From: Podarcis bocagei
Taxonomy: Eukaryota
DNA: 64,000 nt
Direction: 5' to 3' (one strand)
Assembly: GCA_964188305.1 (NCBI GenBank)
Contig: OZ076901.1
The notes below the pieces were generated by a model. It was not told where the DNA came from, did not search any database, and saw only the letters and a program-made list of their open reading frames with translations. Below, piece after piece: positions 1,249 to 31,919 of this stretch (its first letter is position 1; each line of letters starts with the position of its first letter). The translations under genes and the position numbers were made by a program.

Positions 1249-1860
1249 CCGTATTTTTCGCCCCACAAGACGCACCGGCCCATAAGACGCACCTAGTTTT
1301 TTGGGGGGGGAATAAAGGGAAAAAATTTTTATTTCCCCCCCCCAGGTGCGCTGCGCTAATCCCGAAGCTTGGGGCGTGTGGAGCTCAGCACGCCCCAAGC
1401 TTCTGGGTGCCGGCAAGGTCTCCGCTAGCCTTGGGAGAGCCGCGCGGCTCTCCCAGGGCTAGCGGACTGCTGCGCTAATCCCGAAGCTTGGGGCGTGCGG
1501 AGCTCAGCGCGCCCCAAGCTTCTGGGTGCCGGCAAGGTCTCCGCTAGCCGTGGGAGAGCCGCGCGGCTCTCCCAGGGCTAGCGGACCGCTGCGCTAATCC
1601 CGAAGCTTGGGGCGTGCGGAGCTCAGCGCGCCCCAAGCTTCTGGGTGCCGGCAAGCTCTCCGCTAGCCCTGGGAGAGCTGGGTCTCCCACAGCTAGCGGA
1701 TAGCTTCCTGAAGCCTGGAGAGCAAGAGGGGTCGGTGCGTACCGACCCCCCTCGCTCTCCAGGCTTCAGCGAAAGCCTGCATTCGCCCCATAAGACGCAC
1801 ACACATTTCCCCTTCATTTTTGGAGGGGAAAAAGTGTGTCTTATAGGGCGAAAAATACGG
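1249..1860. mobile_element. Non-autonomous Tc1/mariner (Tc2-type) element with internal palindromic tandem array
   Basis: TA at 1247-1248 and 1861-1862; TIRs CCGTATTTTTCGCCCCACAAGACGCAC / GTGTGTCTTATAGGGCGAAAAATACGG; subterminal CCATAAGACGCAC repeats; no transposase ORF. Confidence 0.9.
1351..1700. repeat. 119-bp GC-rich tandem repeat, about 3 copies, each with two hairpins
   Basis: CTGCGCTAATCCCGAAGCTT recurs at 1351, 1470 and 1589. Confidence 0.95.
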
Positions 1861-1984
1861 TATATAATTTAGTTAATTTAGCTAATTCTCCAATAAGCAG
1901 AACCTCTATAAACCCTTTGCCAAGTGTGTTGGGAAGGCAGCTAATATGAAAAATGGGATCAATGTGTCTTTTCCATCTATTTAG

Positions 1985-2208
1985 TTTTTATTTTATTTTA
2001 TTTTATTTATTAAATTTGTACTCTGCCCTATACCTGTAGATCTCAGGGTGGTTCACAACATATAAAAAACAGAAAACACGTAATAAAAACAAGAACAAAG
2101 ACAACCCAATAACCGCCCACCCTCCCACAATGCATTTTTAAAAGGCACTGGATGTCTATCAGTCAAAGGCCTGATTAATGTTGAACGTTTTTGCCTGGTG
2201 CCTAAAAG
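1985..2208 (-). mobile_element. Degenerate LINE (L2-type) 3' end
   Basis: (TTTTA)n tail followed by ...ctgccctatacc..gatctcagggtggttcacaaca..., resembling squamate L2 3' ends (from recall). Confidence 0.5.
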
Positions 2209-3303
2209 TGTACCTTATCTTTATTAATCATACATATATAGTTTGGTCTGACAACTTAGGCCAAGAGGTTGGGGCAACACTGCTTAGAGCTGACTGTGAC
2301 TAACTGGTATACAACTTGTTGAAATACTCATTTTATTTTTTAAAGGCTGCTGGGCCAAACCTTCTTGAGGAGTTCCAGGTCCTCGGCCTAAGTTTCCAAA
2401 ACAAAGGCAAATAAGTTTATGTGCATGAGGGGAAGGTAGATGGCAGGGGGGCTGCACTGGGTGGCAGTCTACTTTGTGGGAATCAGAGAGAAAGTTACTT
2501 GGCTACCTCCACTGTTTAAGGAACTGTCTACCAGGTGTAACTCTAACATTACCACTGTGCACCGAGCTGGAGGCTTTGCACAATGGGCCCAATGGGACAG
2601 TGGGCCTAAGAACGTTGGCAAGAAACCAGCCCTAAGGTTGTGTGTATTTCTTCTGTTTCACCAAGAGAAGCTGCATAATTGATAGCAGACATGGTGTTGC
2701 AAATGAAGATTCCCACCATCACACAAGGCACCATTCCTGGCAGCACAATTGATCCATAGACAGCACTGTTCCTGTATCTAGATAACGCCTTGACTTGACT
2801 GCAACTAAATTATACCGTTTGCACAGTCAATGGGCACCTCTAAGCTTTTGCACAAATCCCATTCATTCACATAATCAACAGTTTTGAATAACAAACACCT
2901 GATCATCCATTTGACAACCTGGTAAACCTCGCAAGGATCTAGTCCAGTTTAATTCTCATGCAAGAGAAACTGGACTAACCCCAGGCTTCACTGGTTTGGA
3001 CAACTGGAACTATGTCCTGCCATCTGCTGATTAATACAAATGCATACCATGCACTGGTATTTAGCTGTGACATTTGAGAGTTACTGTGATAAGAACTAAG
3101 CTGCCATGTGGAATCAGATCAAAAGACCCATTTAACCCAGCTTCCTGTGGTCAACAGGAACCGAGAGATGTTTCATGGAAATTCATGAGCCAGCAAAGGA
3201 AGTGATAATTTATTCTTACTGTTCAGTCCCCATCATCTGTTAGTCTGAAATGTACCACTGCTGGAAGATGGGGATTACAATTTTGGCTGCTGAACTGAAC
3301 TAG

Positions 3304-3441
3304 ACTTCCCCAACTGGTGCCCTTCAGATGTTGTTGGACTCCAACTCTCATCAACTGCAGCCAGAATTATGAATGCTCAAAAATGAAGATAAAATTTGTA
3401 ATTGCAAGCATCTGGAGGGTACCCAGTTGGGGAAGGATCTG
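3304..3441. mobile_element. Short foldback MITE (hAT-like); related copies near 85-150, 1050-1160, 18424-18550, 20860-20940, 22850-22935, 34860-34995 and 35620-35730
   Basis: CTTCCCCAACTGGTGCCCTTCAGATG ... CATCTGGAGGGTACCCAGTTGGGGAAG inverted arms; the core ccagatgttg..ggact.caactc.catca recurs across the window. Confidence 0.7.
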
Positions 3442-3692
3442 CTAAATCAACTCCACTCCTCCTTTTATTATGGTGTGCTAACAATATTGAGCACTGATGG
3501 TTTAGGAGGCCCATTTGTTGCCATTTTGCTTCACCCCACACTTGCTTAGTCTGCTCCCATAGCACAGATCTCTTGTTTGAACTAATGACAAAACCAAAGC
3601 ATAAATGCCTGAAAATTAACTGGAACGTAATGGCAATATACAAAGAACAAGGAAACTCATCAGCAAGGCATCCAGCCCACACACCAGACAAA

Positions 3693-3734
3693 ACAGCAGC
3701 AGCAGTAGCAACAACAACAGCAGCAGCAGCAGCA
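3693..3734. repeat. (CAG/CAA)n compound microsatellite
   Basis: cagcagcagcagtagcaacaacaacagcagcagcagcagcag. Confidence 0.9.
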
Positions 3735-6175
3735 GGTCTAAATTCTTCATGTTTCTCCTCCCCCTGCCCATTCCAGTCTCCATTAGAAACTATCCAAAGG
3801 AGGATGAACCTTTATGGTTCCTTAGCATAGAGTGTTCAACGGCAGAAGTGAACGTTTCAAAAATATTTAGCAGTTTTACTCTGAGCTTCTTGAAGGGGAA
3901 ATTCCTCAGGGAAAAATAACCTAGCCACCTCTCCCAGCTTTTTGCATTGTTTGGCTGATTTACAATGAATTCTCATGCTATATTTGAACACAGAAAATGC
4001 TGCCATTAGTAGCTGAACATAGGGAACTATAGATAGTGGATCGGTCTATTTCTGGTTTGTGCCTGTTTTCCATGTGTTCATTCATAAGTTTATTCTGTCT
4101 CATTTCCACATTAATCTACTTTCCCATTTTTTAAACTAATCCAGATAATAATTCACATTTAAGGATGTATTCATATTTTAATATGTATTTTTACCATAAA
4201 ACATACATTTAGATCAGCATTTTAGCTCAATATGCACACTTCTGAACATATTTAATCCTAAAATATGCTTTAAAAATATACTGTTGTACTTGATTTGGTC
4301 TATCCATTTTTCTAAATAAAACATGCCTTCCCATGTGGCTCAAACAATCTATAGTATGGCTTCTTGTGTCATTTGAACCTGGACTGTGATTTGTTTGCCT
4401 TAACCAAACATTAAACAGCAAGCCAAAAATAAACCAAGAAGTCAGATAGGAACTTGCGTGGCAGGAGAGAAGCCTGTTCACAATGAAAACATGGCTCAGG
4501 ACAAACTGTAGCTTATCATGACATACAAAGCAGTCCAATGCCTCCAAACCATTCTGCTCTCTATGTACAGTATGTGTTTGGATCTGAATTCCCTACTTTT
4601 CTACACTGTCATAACTAATGAAAAAGGTTCAACACTTTTCTTTGACCTTAAACGCAATTAACTAATAAGCACTGCTTGAATTTGTAGCTGCATAAGAACT
4701 GAGCAATGCTCTCCCTTTCTTTCTTTATTCACTTGCTGTTCACATGGGACTATTATGACGAGCGGCCAGCCCTGTGCAGCTTCTGGCCACATCCAATCCG
4801 AAGACATCATCTTTATTTCAAAACTGCTAATTATTTTTGCCATCAAGAACAAAAAAATGATTTCGATATGTGGTCGACGACAGTTAACAAGCGAGCACAA
4901 AGGCAGCCAGGGCTTTTGTGCCTGGAGTTACGTGCAGCGTGAAAGAGTAAAAGTGCAGGATATCAAGAGAAAAAAGAATGAACAAGCTCATTTGGGTCCA
5001 CAGAATGTTTTTAGGCTACATATGCATCTCTCCCTTCCCTCACCCCCCCCCCCAATTTCTCCCAAGCAACTTCTGCTTTTGGTAGTTGCTGTAATGGCTG
5101 TTGCACACTGGAATCGCAGCACCAATACCCGGCCCATCACCTAAGAGCAAAAGGATGGGTACAACATTCCTTGCATGTTTGGCAGTCAGAAAGGAACAAA
5201 AACATGCACCTCCCAAGAGGCTACAGATCCAGCAAGCTCCTGGGAAGCAATGGAATAGATTATTTAGGTCTGCAAATAAATAATCATTTCTTCGTGTGTG
5301 GTTAAGAAATCGCCTCTGGGCAACCATGCAAGGAGAAGTAGATGGAGAATTGGTTCTGTTACCTGGGGCTAGAATCAATAACACATAGCTCCACATGGTG
5401 TACCATCGACAGTGGAAGGTCACCAGATACTAGAATGACTCCACCCACCCAGGCTGGTTTTTGGTTGTAGTCAACAAAAAGGGCTACAAAACCTCCCTAT
5501 TAGTGCTAGGACTTGGCCTCAGAAATAAAAGCCTTTCCTGGCTCTAGACTTGGGCCCTAGCACATACCCTTTGGCTCCTGGCTCTCTCTTGATGGCTTAG
5601 CTCAGGGAAGTTCCATTCTTATGTGAAGCCATTGCAGGTTTGCAAATTACTAAGGCGGGGATTTGTTTGTTTTTTGCTAAGCTGACATAAATATGAATCC
5701 TACCTTAACATACAACAAGAGCAATGAAATTGTATGAGGCTAGTTTCACCCTGTTCTGCTACCTCTCAACAGGCCAATATACGTATTGCACACATCACAG
5801 GAGACTGCTGAACCCAGCCCCCAACTATCTATCATGTGTTTTTTGCAATGCATAATATCATTTGGATTCTTACAATCACAATGACTCCATGTCAATGACA
5901 GATATTCTGATCTATGCTAATTGGACATGGGGGACCCAGAGGTAAGGGCTACAGTGAGATCCATTGGCTTACTACAGTGGAATCAGGTTAGTTGTCAGCA
6001 GCCGTTTATCCTCCAAGGGATTTGTATGACATTTTGGGAACATGCCTTGGTAGAATAGCAGCCAACGGTGTAAGCCAGGGAGTCCCCAATTCAAATTCCA
6101 CCTCATCTGTTGACTCTCTTGGTAGCTATAGCTATGTTACGCTTTCCTTCGTCTTGAATCCTCCATTAGCAGTGT

Positions 6176-6577
6176 GGGAAAGGGAACGAGGAATCTGCCA
6201 ATTTTGAATTTCATTAGTTTCCCATTTCTGCAGTTTTAAGTTCAGTTCATGACATTTCAGCATCAGTGTGCAATTCTGTTTGAAAAAAGTCTCATGACTC
6301 TGAATTTTATTGCCATTTTTTCCTACTATGTATATACCTTTCAGAATCCAATTTTACCTAATGTACACATTTTTGCAAGCAATCGTCTTTAGTATAATGC
6401 ATTTTAAGGCACATTTTCTCCTAATATACAATTTTTTGGGGCAGAGGAACTGCATTGCAAAATATATGAATTTCAAAAGATAGGTGCGTTTTGGTTCACA
6501 TATTGCCTCAAAAATGGAAAGTTAGGTAAGTCCTTATTAAAATGAAATCCAAGCCATGTTCCCACTCCCGTCCCTAG
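6176..6577. mobile_element. Old AT-rich non-autonomous DNA element; related copies at about 4020-4330 and 19595-19850
   Basis: Shared motifs (aatatgcacacttctg / aatgtacacatttttgc / tgcattgcaaaat) and degenerate AGGGA...TCCCTA ends. Confidence 0.4.
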
Positions 6578-6808
6578 TGTGGGAAATCTAATCTTGGTGA
6601 ACCCTAGAGAGCTGTTGCATGGGATACTGAAATAATATAACTATTAAATATTACTATCTGCATGTGAACCAAGCTTAGAGGAACAGCGGTTCCAGTGTGC
6701 AACATTATACTGCCAGTTGAGAGGGAGTAGAGGAAGCTCCTAGGCCTTCTACTTCCCCTGATTTTATTGCCCTGCTGCAGGAGGACTGGACCTAAGGTGA
6801 AGCAATAC

Positions 6809-6951
6809 CTTCTCTTCATTACTGATGTTCCGTGTAGAGGTCCTCCACGTGATGGAGGGGATGGGGTCTCCAGAAGCTTCACAGGTCAGAGTGATCTGGT
6901 CTTCCAGTTCCATAGCAGTTTTGTTCTCCACATAGGTGATTTTGGGTTTTG
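6809..6951 (-). CDS. NCAM1: NCAM1 coding exon 8 (N-terminal half of Ig4), 143 bp
   Basis: tttAG|CAAAACCC...GAAGAGAAG|GTattg; (A)KPKITYVENKTAMELEDQITLTCEASGDPIPSITWRTSTRNISNEEK; phase 1/0; this exon precedes the VASE insertion point. Confidence 0.97.
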
Positions 6952-8725
6952 CTAAAGAAAGGGTACAAAAGCACACAAAAGAAGGTTTATTTGGTTGTTG
7001 GTTTATGTTGTCTGAAAACACAGGGCACCATCCTCCGAGGAGTCACAACTGAGCAAGGCTCATCAAAATAAATTCCATTCCCATTTATTTCATTGGGAAT
7101 TGCCAAGAGTCTGACCATTACTAGTTGCAGGCATAAGGGAACCAAAACCTATCAAGGCTTTGCAACTGTATACATGAATCTTAATAATCAATTTATTATT
7201 TTTAAGAACAATAATGCTAGATAGTAATATTAAGGCTACAATCCAAGCAAATATTGGCTGCACTCCATTAACAACCTAGAAATAAGATCAATATAAGTAT
7301 CCTTCTAAGGAGGCATACATAGGATTGTGCTCAAATTCTCTCACTAAAATCCATACAATTGAAATGTAATTAACTTCTTTGTTTCTTTATTTTTAAGGCA
7401 TTTGTGTACAGCCATTCATAAACATTTATTCCAGGGTACTTAACAAAACAATACAAATCAAACACAGTCAGAAAAAAATATACAATGCAACATTAGCTTT
7501 TGATGGATCATATTAAAGTATACTATAATCCCATAATGAAAGTTAATTTGCATAATAATCTTGTTCATTTTGCATATTTTTGCTCCTGCACACTGCAGAA
7601 AGAGATTTTAAGGAGCAGCTGAATATTCACTAGGCATTGTTTTTACCCAGGGCATCTCAGGGGCCATAGAGTCGATTGATTCTCACTATCTAATGACAGA
7701 GGGAAAGGTCCAACCTCGTGAGGCATTTAACATCGGATGCCTCCTTCAGGAGGCTGTGGGAAGGTCTGCAGCTAGTTCCTCTCAGACATCAAGGCACCGA
7801 CATCACACACAAGAGGAAGCACCCCAAGTGTGTGCATGTGGGTCAGGATCCTGATAGGAAGGGCACCCTGATAAGCTCCTGGAACATGAGAAAAACCATG
7901 TCAGCGCAGGAGCTTTATTACCCACAACCAAAGTCAATGGGCGGGAAACTTTCTCTCAAAAATGTGTATTTTAGTGGTTGTGGTTATTATGATTGGTTTT
8001 AATGTTTACTTTTGTAAGTCACTTTGGGTCATTTTTGTGAGGAAAGCAACTAGTAGCAATAATAATAATAACAATGGTAGACACCACACAAAGCCAGAAC
8101 ATAAGAAGAAAATGTGTATCTCACACAGAACCATAGATAGGTGATCTTGCACCCCTAACAGAACCGCCTAGATTGCGCCCCCTAGCCACAGACAAATTAG
8201 CTCTTCTTTCTGCCTCTCCTCCAATCCCCCAACCCCATTCAATTCACCCTCTATTTAAAACCATTTCTTATGAGGCAATAATCAATATTTATAGTTATGG
8301 ACATAGTTTTAAACTACTTTTGGGGCCCTCCCCATCGCCTGCACCCCTGGCAGGGGCCCACCTCACCACCCCCTAGCCACGGCCCTGATCCCACACACCT
8401 ACCTTCTACTCTGCTGTTGAGTCCAGAAGACAAGGGTGGCTTGATTCTCTCTCCTGACCCTTTTGGATTGCTCTCTCAAGAATTAGAAACTTGCCAAATA
8501 TTACATGAAATCTGGGAAGCTAAGCTGGGGACTAGCAAACTCATTTTTATCTATGTACCAGGTATAGACATACAGTGGTACCCCGCAAGACGAACGCCTC
8601 GCGAGACGAAAAACTCGCAAAACGAAAGGTTTTTTCGTTTTCGAGTTGCCTCGCAAGACGAATTTCCCTATGGGCTTGCTTCGCAAGACGAAGCTTGCCC
8701 CGGGGACGAAGCTTGCTCCCGGGGA

Positions 8726-9155
8726 CAGGGAGATCACTATCTCCCCGCAGCCCCTTGCTTCAAAAGAGGTCCGGGGGCAGCGGGAAGCTAAGCGCTTCTT
8801 TCCCGCTGCCCCCCAACGTCTTTTGCAGCAAGGGGCTGCAGGGAGATCGCTATCTCCCCGCAGCCCCTTGCTTCAAAAGAGGTCCAGGGGCAGCGGGAAG
8901 CTAAGCGCTTCTTCCCTGCTGCCCCCCGACGTCTTTTGCAGCAAGGGGCTGCAGGGAGATCGCTATCTCCCCGCAGCCCCTTGCTTCAAAAGAGGTCCAG
9001 GGGCAGCGGGAAGCTAAGCGCTTCTTCCCTGCTGCCCCCCGACGTCTTTTGCAGCAAGGGGCTGCAGGGAGATCGCTATCTCCCTGCAGCCCCTTGCTGC
9101 AAAAGACGTCCGGGGGAAGCGGGGAAGAAGCCGCTTCCCCCGGATGTCTTTTGCA
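8726..9155. repeat. 113-bp tandem repeat, about 3.8 copies
   Basis: CAGGGAGATC starts at 8726, 8839, 8952 and 9065. Confidence 0.95.
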
Positions 9156-9545
9156 GGGTTGCCGGCATGCCGAAGCCTGCGCGCGCTGACATCAGCGTTC
9201 CCAGGCTTCGCGGACCTCTCCGCCAGCAGGAGAGGTCCGCGAAGCCTGGGAGCGCTGATGTCAGCGCGCGCAGGCTTCGGCATGCCGGCAACCCTCCGCC
9301 AGCAGCGGCAGCGCTGCCGCTGCTGGCGGAGAGGTCCGCGAAGCCTGGGAGCGCTGATGTCAGCGCGCGCAGGCTTCGGCATGCCGGCAACCCTCCGCCA
9401 GCAGCGGCAGCGCTGCCGCTGCTGGCGGAGAGGTCCGCGAAGCCTGGGAGCGCTGATGTCAGCGCGCGCAGGCTTCGGCATGCCGGCAACCCTCTGCCAG
9501 CAGCGGCAGCGCTGCCGCTGCTGGCGGAGAGGTCCGCGAAGCCTT
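9156..9545. repeat. 99-bp tandem repeat (3 copies plus a partial) preceded by an inverted partial copy
   Basis: AGAGGTCCGCGAAGCC starts at 9231, 9330, 9429 and 9528; 9156-9229 is the reverse complement of most of the unit. Confidence 0.95.
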
Positions 9546-9999
9546 GGCCGGACAGCTTTTGAAGGCAGGCGGGGGGGGGGAGCAAAGACTTTCGCCCCCG
9601 CCAGCCTTCAGAAGAGGAAGGCTGGCGGGGGGCAAAAGTCTTTGTCCCCCCTGCCTGCCTTCCCAGGGGCTTTTAAATCGCCCCGGACAGCGGAGAAGTC
9701 CTCCGCTGTCCCGGGGTTTTTTAAAATGCTGGGGGTGGGAAGAAAAGCCCTTGCCCCCCCCCCAGCCTTCAGAAGAGGTCCGGGGACAGACTGTCCCCGG
9801 ACCTGGTCTGAAGGCGGTTTCCCTAGGAACGCATTAATTGATTTTCAATGCATTCCTATGGGAAACCGTGCATCGCAAGACGAAAAAACCGCAAGACGAA
9901 GAGAATTGCGGAACGAATTAATTTCGTCTTGCGAGGCACCACTGTATTTATTCATGTGCTGCTGTTGTTTTAGATTGTATGTGTGTGTATCTATATCTA

Positions 10000-10461
10000 T
10001 CTAGTTAAAGCTATGGTTTTCCCAGTAGTGATGTATGGAAGTGAAAGCTAGACCATAAAGAAGGCTGATCGCCGAAGAATTGATGCTTTTGAATTATGGT
10101 GCTGGAGGAGACTCTTGAGAGCCCCATGGACTGCAAGAAGATCAAACCTCTCCATTCTGAAGGAAATCAGCCCTGAGTGCTCACTGGAAGGACAGATCCT
10201 GAAGCTGAGGCTCCAATACTTTGGCCACCTCATGAGAAGAGAAGACTCCCTGGAAAAGACCCTGATGCTGGGAAAGACTGAGGACAGAAGGAGAAGGGGA
10301 TGACAGAGGACGAGATGGTTGGACAGTGTTCTCGAAGCTACCAGCATGAGTTTGACCAAACTGCGGGAGGCAGTGGAAGACAGGAGTGCCTGGCGTGCTC
10401 TGGTCCATGGGGTCACAAAGAGTCGGACATGACTAAGTGACTAAACAACAAACAACAACAA
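10000..10461 (+). mobile_element. 5'-truncated RTE-BovB LINE (ORF C-terminus plus 3' end)
   Basis: Encodes ...IDAFELWCWRRLLRAPWTARRSNLSILKEISPECSLEGQILKLRLQYFGHLMRREDSLEKTLMLGK..., the BovB C-terminus; ends ccatggggtcacaaagagtcggacatgact with a (CAA)n tail; contains in-frame stops. Confidence 0.95.
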
Positions 10462-28527: not shown

Positions 28528-28763
28528 CAGTGGTACCTCGGGTTACAGGCGCTTCAGGTTACAGACGCTTCAGGTTACAGACTCCGCTAACCCAGAAATA
28601 TTACCTCGGGTTAAGAACTTTGCTTCAGGATGAGAACAGAAATCCGGCGGCGCAGCAGCAGCAGAAGACCCCACTAGCTAAAGTGTTGCTTCAGGTTAAG
28701 AACACTTTCAGGTTAAGAACGGACCTCCGGAACGAATTAAGTATGTAACCAGAGGTACCACTG
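28528..28763. mobile_element. 236-bp Tigger/pogo-type MITE
   Basis: TA flanks; CAGTGGTACCTCGGGTTACA / TGTAACCAGAGGTACCACTG; internal TTCAGGTTA(C/A) repeats. Confidence 0.9.
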
Positions 28764-30517: not shown

Positions 30518-31099
30518 GGAGAGGAATATATATTTCCATGACATAGTCTTCTCTGTTTTGCTTAGAAAACTTTAGCTTTCTCCATAAAAGGTTAGTAAAA
30601 GGAATGGATTAGTACTATAGTATTAGGTCACGGATGTGACCCTTTGAGCAAGCTGTATCTCATTATGCTTTTATAATGTGGAAGGATCAGTAGAGTCTAT
30701 AGATTGATTTGAAGCTTGTCAGTGTAGGAGAGAAACGTGTGAGGATGGCCCACGCTACATTTGGCATAAAAAGAATACAAACTGGTTCATTTTGAACGAG
30801 TGAAATATTTGACGAGACATGTTGATATGCACTGTGTGCTTTTCTTCCATAGGGTTGCAACTCATGAGCTGGGGTGGCTTTTCCACATTCCAAGTACCCA
30901 ACCCAACTGGTAACCAATACCACCCACACAGAAAAATGATAGGGGCTTTTTCTTGTGTCCCAGGTGAAACCCCAGCATCTCCAGGCAGGGCTGGGAACAC
31001 CCCATGCCTGAAACCATGGCAAGGAGGTGCTGCTTTCACCACCAGTATGATGTTAATAGCAGGGGCAGGGGGAGATGTGTGTGTGTGTTGGGGGCCCAT

Positions 31100-31919
31100 T
31101 GTTGGCACAGTGCCAATTCCCACCTGCGGAGACCAAGGAGTGGTCAGTGTCGTAAAGCCACTTCCAACATCAGGAGGAGGTGGCTTCACGCCCCCAACAC
31201 ACGCACAGAGGCTGGTTTCCAGCCCCCGCGCGATCAGGGGAATCCTAGGGCCGTGTCATCCCCTGAGCCAGCCAATCGGCTGGCGAAGGGTGTGTGGCTT
31301 CCCTCATTTAAGGCAAGCCGGGCCCCGGGATCTCCCTCTTTGGTCTGCGCAGCTGCTGTTGTTTCCCGCCCGCCCTTTGAGGTTCCCCTTCTGACCTTGC
31401 TATGGACCTCGGTTGGTCACCGTTAAGAGGGGCCTGGTAGGATTTTTTTCCACTTGGCAAATCGGCACCGGCCATTTGGTTTTTCGCCTACCTCATAGCA
31501 AATCGTCACAACTCCTTTGGTTTTGGCGGTTAGGCATTGGTAGGGGTATTGTTATGTAGATGTGTTGGGGGGGAGCACCATCATCTCCCCCAAATATTGA
31601 AGGGTAGTCCGGTAAAGGATTCCAGGGGGCATGGCCTCATCCGAAGCCTATGGAGGTCATGGCCTAAAGCGCGCCCCCGAGTGGAAACCCCGGGGGAGTC
31701 CCTAGTTGATGTGCATCAGCAGGGCTCCCCCTGCTGGTGTTAACCCTTCCCGGTCTTCAAGCAAACAGGCTGAAGCCGGATAGTCGGATAGGACCAATGC
31801 CTAAGCCAATACCGCTCTTTACCTGTAACCAATAAAGTTGTGACCAATTTTAGCCCATTAACCTAAAACAATGGTGTCATGTGTCTTTATTTCTACTGGG
31901 GGGAGGCAGGAACTCGCCA
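31100..31919 (+). mobile_element. Probable solo LTR, about 0.82 kb, antisense to NCAM1
   Basis: CpG-rich block starting TGTTGG at 31100; CCAAT at 31272, TATA-like CATTTAA near 31305, AATAAA at 31831-31836; ends either ...CTCGCCA (31919) or ...CTCG (31916) with a CCAT 4-bp duplication (31096-31099 / 31917-31920); no internal gag/pol. Confidence 0.65.

Follow-up and report, generated by a model that had tools for sequence, protein, structure and literature searches.

The window analyzed here is a 64,000-nucleotide stretch of the genome of Podarcis bocagei (GenBank assembly GCA_964188305.1, contig OZ076901.1), and it contains two TA-flanked elements with terminal inverted repeats (TIRs), which we call E1 and E2 and which lie 7 kb apart. 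E1 (1249-1860) is 612 bp long and has a GC content of 62%, compared with 44% for the window; E2 (8573-9944) is 1372 bp long and has a GC content of 63%. Between its ends each element carries a tandem array of a GC-rich unit built from two hairpins, and the relation between these two units is the subject of this report. The open reading frames of E1 and E2 are periodic read-throughs of the repeats that run in several frames and on both strands. A Pfam scan of these frames gave no domain above the cut-off, and a search of a protein word index with the frame encoded by the E1 array returned no relatives. [quoted passage not shown] Both have arrays other than microsatellites between intact ends, which is the mark of a tandem-repeat-containing MITE.

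The coordinates of all parts are given in Table 1. The ends of E1 form an inverted repeat of 29 nt (1247-1275 with 1834-1862) that is 90% complementary and starts with CCGTATTTTTCGCCC, and those of E2 form one of 25 nt (8570-8594 with 9923-9947) that is 92% complementary. The motif CCCAyAAGACGCAC occurs in two or three copies within E1. For the array of E1, Tandem Repeats Finder (TRF) gave a period of 119 bp with 2.8 copies at 1349-1678 and 96% matches, and the units are 95 to 97% identical to each other. This array is followed by a solitary hairpin, H3, at the position expected for a fourth hairpin A. The base of its stem matches the E2-type GAAGCCTGG, and its similarity to the E2 unit is marginal (z-score of 1.7 to 2.8).

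E2 contains two arrays, preceded by left subterminal repeats that TRF reported as rows of 18 bp. The unit of the first array, 113 bp long, consists of two inverted halves of about 55 bp each (TRF period of 55, 62% matches), and inverted repeats with arms of up to 104 nt span neighboring units. For the second array TRF gave a period of 99 bp with 3.2 copies at 9229-9544 and 99% matches; its units are 99 to 100% identical to each other. Between the two arrays lies an inverted partial copy of the 99-bp unit. Together with the stretch 9229-9295, this copy (9155-9229) makes up a near-perfect palindrome of 141 bp, with 67-nt arms that are complementary at 66 of 67 positions and a 7-nt spacer.

We found that the 119-bp unit of E1 and the 99-bp unit of E2 have the same architecture, in which hairpin A is followed by a linker containing TGCCGGCAA and then by hairpin B. 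This agrees with the original prediction, made from the letters of the window, that both elements carry the same palindromic module. The two strings on which it had been based are present exactly at 1482-1548 and 9240-9303. In our alignment they agree in 50 of 67 columns, with 14 mismatches and gaps in the other 3, where about 49/67 identities had been counted by hand. Cyclic local alignment of unit against unit gave a score of 58 (z about 13). The corresponding null scores were 20.8 ± 3.2 for dinucleotide shuffles, 18.3 ± 3.0 for palindrome-preserving shuffles, which retain the palindromy and the mismatch pattern of each hairpin, and 18.4 ± 2.9 when both units were shuffled. A score of 58 was reached by 0 of 2,000 shuffles in any null. 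Thus, the similarity is far above that of palindrome-preserving controls. Array against array scored 69 (z = 16), while all other pairs of parts from E1 and E2 stayed at a z of 3 or less. The 113-bp array of E2, which has the same composition and symmetry as the arrays of the shared unit, provided a natural negative control: its z against the E1 array was about -0.6 on one strand and about -0.1 on the other. It is a second palindromic array, unrelated to the shared module. An nhmmer profile built jointly from all units recovered every unit of both arrays, with E values between 1e-22 and 1e-26, and had no other match in the window. Judged from their sequences, the units of E1 and E2 are homologous.

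A whole unit aligns over 99 ungapped columns, and E1 and E2 agree in 72 of them, so that identity between the arrays is 73%. The outer stems of the two hairpins agree in 30 of 34 columns (about 88%) and the linker core TGCCGGCAA in 9 of 9. Identity is 10 of 28 columns in the interior of hairpin B, where the units differ in length by 10 nt, and 4 of 15 at the unit junction, where the letters that link one unit to the next are CGCTGCGCTAATCC in E1 but AGGTCCG in E2. What the elements have in common is not an array but a discrete cassette of about 85 to 105 bp, made up of hairpin A, an 8-bp palindromic linker (TGCCGGCA), and hairpin B. Because the unit junctions are specific to each host, tandem amplification took place separately in the two elements. 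Identity is 95 to 100% within the arrays and 73% between them, and the arrays are therefore much younger than the split of the cassette. The differences between units of an array fall mostly at CpG sites and are chiefly changes of CpG to TpG or CpA. The ratio of observed to expected CpG is 0.8 to 0.96 in the arrays, compared with 0.26 in the window; with a ratio still this high, and units 95 to 100% identical to each other, the arrays are recent.

We also considered whether the unit was derived from hairpins of its own host, namely, GAAGCCTGG in H3, CGAAGCTTGC at the left end of E2, or CCGCCAGC in the right interior of E2. This origin was unsupported; the alignments were marginal (z of 3 or less). 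Words (k-mers) common to each unit and the non-array parts of its own host were not above those in shuffles. The left subterminal region of E1 had no significant similarity to E2 except for homopolymer runs, and the G-run hairpins of E1 and E2 likewise matched each other only in homopolymers.

The two elements had been described as having unrelated termini. This holds for the tips, which differ over the outer 8 to 12 nt (CCGTATTTTTCG in E1 and CAGTGGTA in E2). However, the next 15 nt are identical at 13 of 15 positions, and the description was to that extent overstated. This inner TIR motif is found at 1261-1275 in E1 and at 8581-8595 in E2, at offsets of 13 and 9 from the tip. In addition, both elements have repeats of an AAGACG motif, which are direct at the left end and inverted at the right end. 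E1 and E2 are mosaics that have only the inner TIR motif and the cassette in common.

Table 1. Positions of the parts of E1 and E2 in the 64,000-nucleotide window
Feature	Position	Strand	Remarks
TA target-site duplication of E1	1247-1248 (left), 1861-1862 (right)	.	direct reading of letters
E1 left TIR	1249-1275	+	tip CCGTATTTTTCG; inner motif CCCCACAAGACGCAC at 1261-1275
E1 left subterminal region	1278-1345	+	second AAGACGCAC copy at 1278-1292; G8...C9 AT-loop hairpin
E1 array	1349-1706	+	119-bp unit, about 3 copies
E1 hairpin A copies	1363-1403, 1482-1522, 1601-1641	+	inverted-repeat search
E1 linker TGCCGGCAA copies	from 1408, 1527, 1646	+	motif matches
E1 hairpin B copies	1421-1466, 1540-1585, 1653-1706	+	inverted-repeat search
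E1 solitary hairpin H3 (GAAGCCTGGAGAGC...GCTCTCCAGGCTTC)	1708-1769	+	29-nt arms, 93% complementary
E1 right TIR	1834-1860	-	TA directly after, 1861-1862
TA target-site duplication of E2	8571-8572 (left), 9945-9946 (right)	.	direct reading of letters
E2 left TIR (CAGTGGTACCCCGCAAGACGAA) and subterminal CGCAAGACGAA repeats, 16-nt spacing	8573-8725	+	
E2 first array	8726-9154	+	113-bp palindromic unit x3.5 (TRF) and closing hairpin
Inverted partial copy of 99-bp unit (hairpin A and linker)	9155-9229	-	nhmmer minus-strand match, E = 9e-15
E2 second array	9240-9544	+	99-bp unit x3.2, with GCATGCCGGCAACC between hairpins A and B
E2 right interior	9548-9830	+	further GC-rich hairpins with G/C runs, about 280 bp, not common to E1
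E2 subterminal repeats of the right end, with right TIR at 9923-9944	9831-9944	-	

The outer stems of the two units differ at four positions in total, and all four fall in two coupled changes between a T:A and a C:G pair. At alignment pairs 7-36 and 64-99, every unit of E1 has T:A and every unit of E2 has C:G, which bears out the compensatory stem changes noticed in the original prediction. By a simple count, the chance that four outer-stem differences form two complementary pairs is about 3e-4. From the six units RNAalifold derived a consensus of 27 pairs; in 6 of these both sides change, in two of them unambiguously. The hairpin arms are truly coupled. Folding as single-stranded DNA gave -48.5 kcal/mol (z of -7.3) for the E1 repeat and -49.6 kcal/mol (z of -8.8) for the 99-bp repeat of E2. 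The two strands fold alike, at about -43 to -50 kcal/mol (z of -5 to -9). In a scan of Rfam 15, all 60 matches were below the gathering threshold, the best with 48 bits against a threshold of 90 bits (mir-1304, matched on both strands), and the strongest palindromic hairpins had sub-threshold microRNA-like matches on both strands. The newest mutations within the arrays are one-sided CpG transitions, which break or weaken pairs. Template switching during replication is documented to produce, in one event, stems that pair perfectly as well as coupled changes (PMC8794818), and the 141-bp palindrome of E2 is, by analogy, the kind of product that it leaves. Therefore, the coupling is no proof of a selected structure: both strands fold alike, the Rfam matches are sub-threshold, the newest mutations are one-sided, and template switching suffices. 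To call the module structure-maintained was to overstate the case, since template switching yields coupled arms without selection (PMC8794818).

Several explanations for the presence of one unit in two elements were weighed. One is that the hairpins are kept by purifying selection, as cruciforms that pair the TIRs, as a binding platform, or as a small-RNA precursor, and that this selection accounts for the coupling of the stems. The two clean compensated pairs, the lack of any one-sided fixed difference in 17 outer-stem pairs, the conservation of the linker palindrome at 9 of 9 positions, and the very stable folding (z of -7 to -9) would all fit. We nonetheless regard it as improbable. Any DNA palindrome folds alike on both strands, the microRNA-like Rfam matches remain sub-threshold and for the strongest hairpins appear on both strands, recent mutations in the arrays hit one side of a pair, and the same coupled pattern can come from template switching without selection (PMC8794818). 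Another explanation is chance or convergence, by which the likeness would reflect only the composition and symmetry of GC-rich palindromic minisatellites. Both units do have a GC content of 69 to 72%, are CpG-rich, and contain nested short palindromes, and their symmetry about halves the number of independent matches. However, whether one unit or both were shuffled with palindromy preserved, scores stayed at 36 or below, against the observed 58, the 113-bp array, of like composition, stays at the null level against E1, and the two units agree in the order of their parts and in the 9-nt linker. On the shuffle nulls and this control array we rejected chance, which we consider extremely unlikely. 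We give equally little weight to nested insertion, in which a copy of one element would have inserted into the other and left the array behind as its remains. Both families do insert at TA, and a nested element with its own TIR and TA remnants, which the original prediction had named as the finding that would undo it, was looked for in E1 and E2. None was found. The 15-mer of the E1 tip occurs at the two ends of E1 only, with up to 3 mismatches allowed, and the best matches of 20-mer tips inside the other element are 12 to 13 of 20. CAGTGGT and AAGACGAA were not found in E1, nor was CCGTATTTT in E2, and no TA-bounded inverted repeat lies at the array borders.

Given the mosaic pattern of E1 and E2, movement of the cassette and replacement of all the rest are the two alternatives. 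We favor movement, in which the cassette would have reached both families after their separation through repair-mediated copying, and we put its probability at about 0.5. During repair of the double-strand gap left by excision, the cassette may have been copied from a member of the opposite family, or both families may have drawn on one third source; template switching would have been helped by the inner TIR motif that both have and by microhomology in the hairpins. The arrays could then grow, and partly flip, by slippage in replication or repair and by template switching at the hairpins; the 141-bp near-perfect palindrome of E2 would be a trace of such flipping. Through copying from arm to arm, a mutation that arose in one arm would be carried over to its partner, and the two T:A/C:G swaps could have come about in this way without selection. 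The element ends would thus serve as a chassis, and the hairpin cassette would be their exchangeable, self-amplifying cargo. Movement is favored because conservation is higher in a neutral piece of the interior than at the tips or anywhere else in the interior, and because the inner motif and the hairpin stems offer microhomology for switching. Precedents are miDNA4, a Tc1/mariner MITE proposed to have taken up a repeat, and the arrays of one type carried by different Helitrons (PMC12628747). The serious rival is common descent with turnover: one ancestral pogo-type MITE would already have held the cassette, its tips and interior would later have been replaced, and amplification would have followed separately in each lineage. 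This history is supported by the agreement of the inner TIR motif at 13 of 15 positions, with hardly any difference in offset, and by the AAGACG repeats, direct on the left and inverted on the right in both elements. We hold it to be possible but distinctly less probable. The tips, normally the best-conserved part of related MITEs, are wholly different here, while a non-coding interior piece keeps 73% of its ungapped columns and about 88% of those in the outer stems. The rest of the interior, about 250 bp in E1 and about 950 bp in E2, is without similarity, and replacement of segments is needed in any case. Several points nevertheless count against movement. Common descent would also account for the inner TIR motif and for the resemblance in how the subterminal repeats are arranged, and the position-restricted test of that motif (p of about 0.001; 1 of 4,817 random genomic 40-mers equals it) was made post hoc. 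No chimeric junction with diagnostic microhomology was identified in E1 or E2. Finally, the putative transfer and its direction are read from mosaic similarity between elements with one copy per family.

Going further, the cassette could be a semi-autonomous passenger that spreads among MITE families by switching of repair templates, has its arms kept matched by arm-to-arm copying, and amplifies in place. We consider this extension doubtful, less probable again than common descent. A cargo of this kind might be tolerated because its fold-back would add little effective length between the TIRs.

We read E1 and E2 as cousin lineages from the pogo/Tigger-Tc2 part of the Tc1/mariner superfamily, an attribution that follows from the TA duplications, the types of tip, and general knowledge. 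This reading fits the coexistence of Tigger-like and Tc2-related ends in Anolis (PMC3014272). The Anolis TcMar-N families are likewise squamate non-autonomous Tc1/mariner elements, with Tigger3/4-like or Tc2-related ends; no autonomous partner was found for them, and the text of that paper, as searched, makes no mention of internal tandem or palindromic arrays (PMC3014272); the comparison with E1 and E2 is by description only. Two other classes were considered and rejected. Foldback elements (FB, Galileo, Tetris), in which very long TIRs of tandem subrepeats take up most of the length, do not match: the TIRs here are 25 to 29 nt long, and the arrays are direct, internal, and unlike between element halves. 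The sole long inverted structure is the local 141-bp palindrome inside E2. An array carried by a Helitron or Helentron, elements that lack TIRs and target duplications and end in a 3' hairpin and CTRR, was rejected as well, as both elements have TIRs and TA duplications.

The original prediction regarded the module as a candidate for an undescribed system. This did not hold up, since tandem-repeat-carrying MITEs, and arrays of the same type in different elements, are already in the literature (PMC12628747, PMC3879986). The carriers include Xstir and miDNA4 of Xenopus, DTC84/pearl of bivalves, and several Drosophila elements (PMC3879986, PMC12628747). In the summary given in PMC12628747, miDNA4 of Xenopus tropicalis is described, like E1 and E2, as a TA-type Tc1/mariner MITE with an interior repeat in one to many tandem copies, and Scalvenzi and Pollet are cited there as having proposed that a pre-existing repeat was captured and that it seeded satellite arrays. 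Unlike E1 and E2, miDNA4 is a single family whose repeat is flanked by AT-rich microhomologies; that summary mentions no GC-rich double hairpin and reports no sharing between families with different tips. The same paper summarizes for Xstir (Hikosaka and Kawahara) that tandem repeats arose from internal sequence of the MITE, as here, and that stem-loop formation during replication was proposed. As described there, Xstir arrays are whole or partial MITEs close together, whereas in E1 and E2 a short internal cassette was amplified inside intact elements.

The DTC84/pearl-type elements of bivalves are modular in a similar way, their flanks being a "cassette" for core repeats of variable number, and a conserved palindrome in each repeat has been proposed as a hotspot of rearrangement (PMC3879986). 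They differ from E1 and E2 in an AA target-site duplication, a microsatellite tail, and Helitron/Helentron affinity, and their core repeats are not double hairpins (PMC3879986). Non-autonomous Helitron and Helentron elements also have the same type of array in different backbones and, like E2, several types of array within one element (PMC7492417, PMC12628747). In contrast to E1 and E2, they move by rolling-circle transposition and are without TIRs or TA duplications. Capture is a known property of Helitrons, whereas a cut-and-paste MITE must take a repair-mediated route. Template-switch mutation, or quasi-palindrome correction, makes perfect stems, coupled changes of several bases, and inversions in one event, as in the units and in the 141-bp palindrome, but it has been described for RNA genes and genome-wide clusters of mutations, not for the cargo of MITEs (PMC8794818).

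Within the 64-kb window, blastn, blastn-short, nhmmer, and motif scans revealed no further copies of E1 or E2. A metagenome scan with the TIR pattern of E1 gave 0 matches, and the E1 tip string in the literature was found in unrelated primers only. A third MITE is present at 28528-28763; it is Tigger-like, 236 bp long, TA-flanked, and without a hairpin array, and its tip is as in E2 (CAGTGGTACC). Its subterminal repeat, GGTTACAGACGCTTCA (16 bp, 2.6 copies), is unlike that of E2, and a right-end block, TTAATTCGTTCCG, is common to it and to the right end of E2. It was considered as a holder of a single copy of the cassette and rejected, as nhmmer had no match there.

Between E1 and E2, an immunoglobulin I-set segment (...ITLTCEASGDPIPSITWRTS...) lies in an open frame at about 6790 to 6960 on the minus strand. 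Among solved structures it matches immunoglobulin domains of NCAM2, DSCAM, ROBO, and contactin, and an NCAM-type gene probably has an exon here. With an NCAM-like exon between them, E1 and E2 would be intronic. Directly to the right of E2, a stretch at about 10020 to 10450 ends in ...GGTCCATGGGGTCACAAAGAGTCGGACATGACTAAGTGACTAAAC and resembles what we take to be the conserved 3' tail of a BovB-type long interspersed nuclear element. The intervals 93-150 and 3300-3365 have in common the motif GGTGCCCT(C/T)CAGATGTT...GGAC(A/T)(A/C)CAACTC, which is presumably akin to a squamate short interspersed nuclear element core. An imperfect CAG/CAA trinucleotide run of 14 copies is found at 3688-3735. The only other sizeable GC-rich stretch of the window, 31050-31700 (59 to 64% GC, 7 to 12 CpG per 200 bp), could be a CpG island or an exon.

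Tandem-repeat-containing MITEs are known already as a kind, and what is new here comes from a squamate, where two TIR families with different tips both carry one palindromic unit of two hairpins. As a single-window case it is a tidy example and no surprise. It touches two open questions, the origin of satellite DNA from transposons and the changeability of MITE interiors, which have been studied mostly in frogs, bivalves, and flies. It also carries a caution, namely, that "compensatory" stem changes in DNA palindromes are no evidence of selected structure. The presence of the same cassette in two families makes the choice between vertical descent and repair-mediated exchange directly testable by a phylogeny of the cassette against that of the termini. 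If the passenger view is true, the cassette would be a common seed of GC-rich satellites dispersed throughout the genome and a second level of "mobile" DNA that rides on cut-and-paste transposons.

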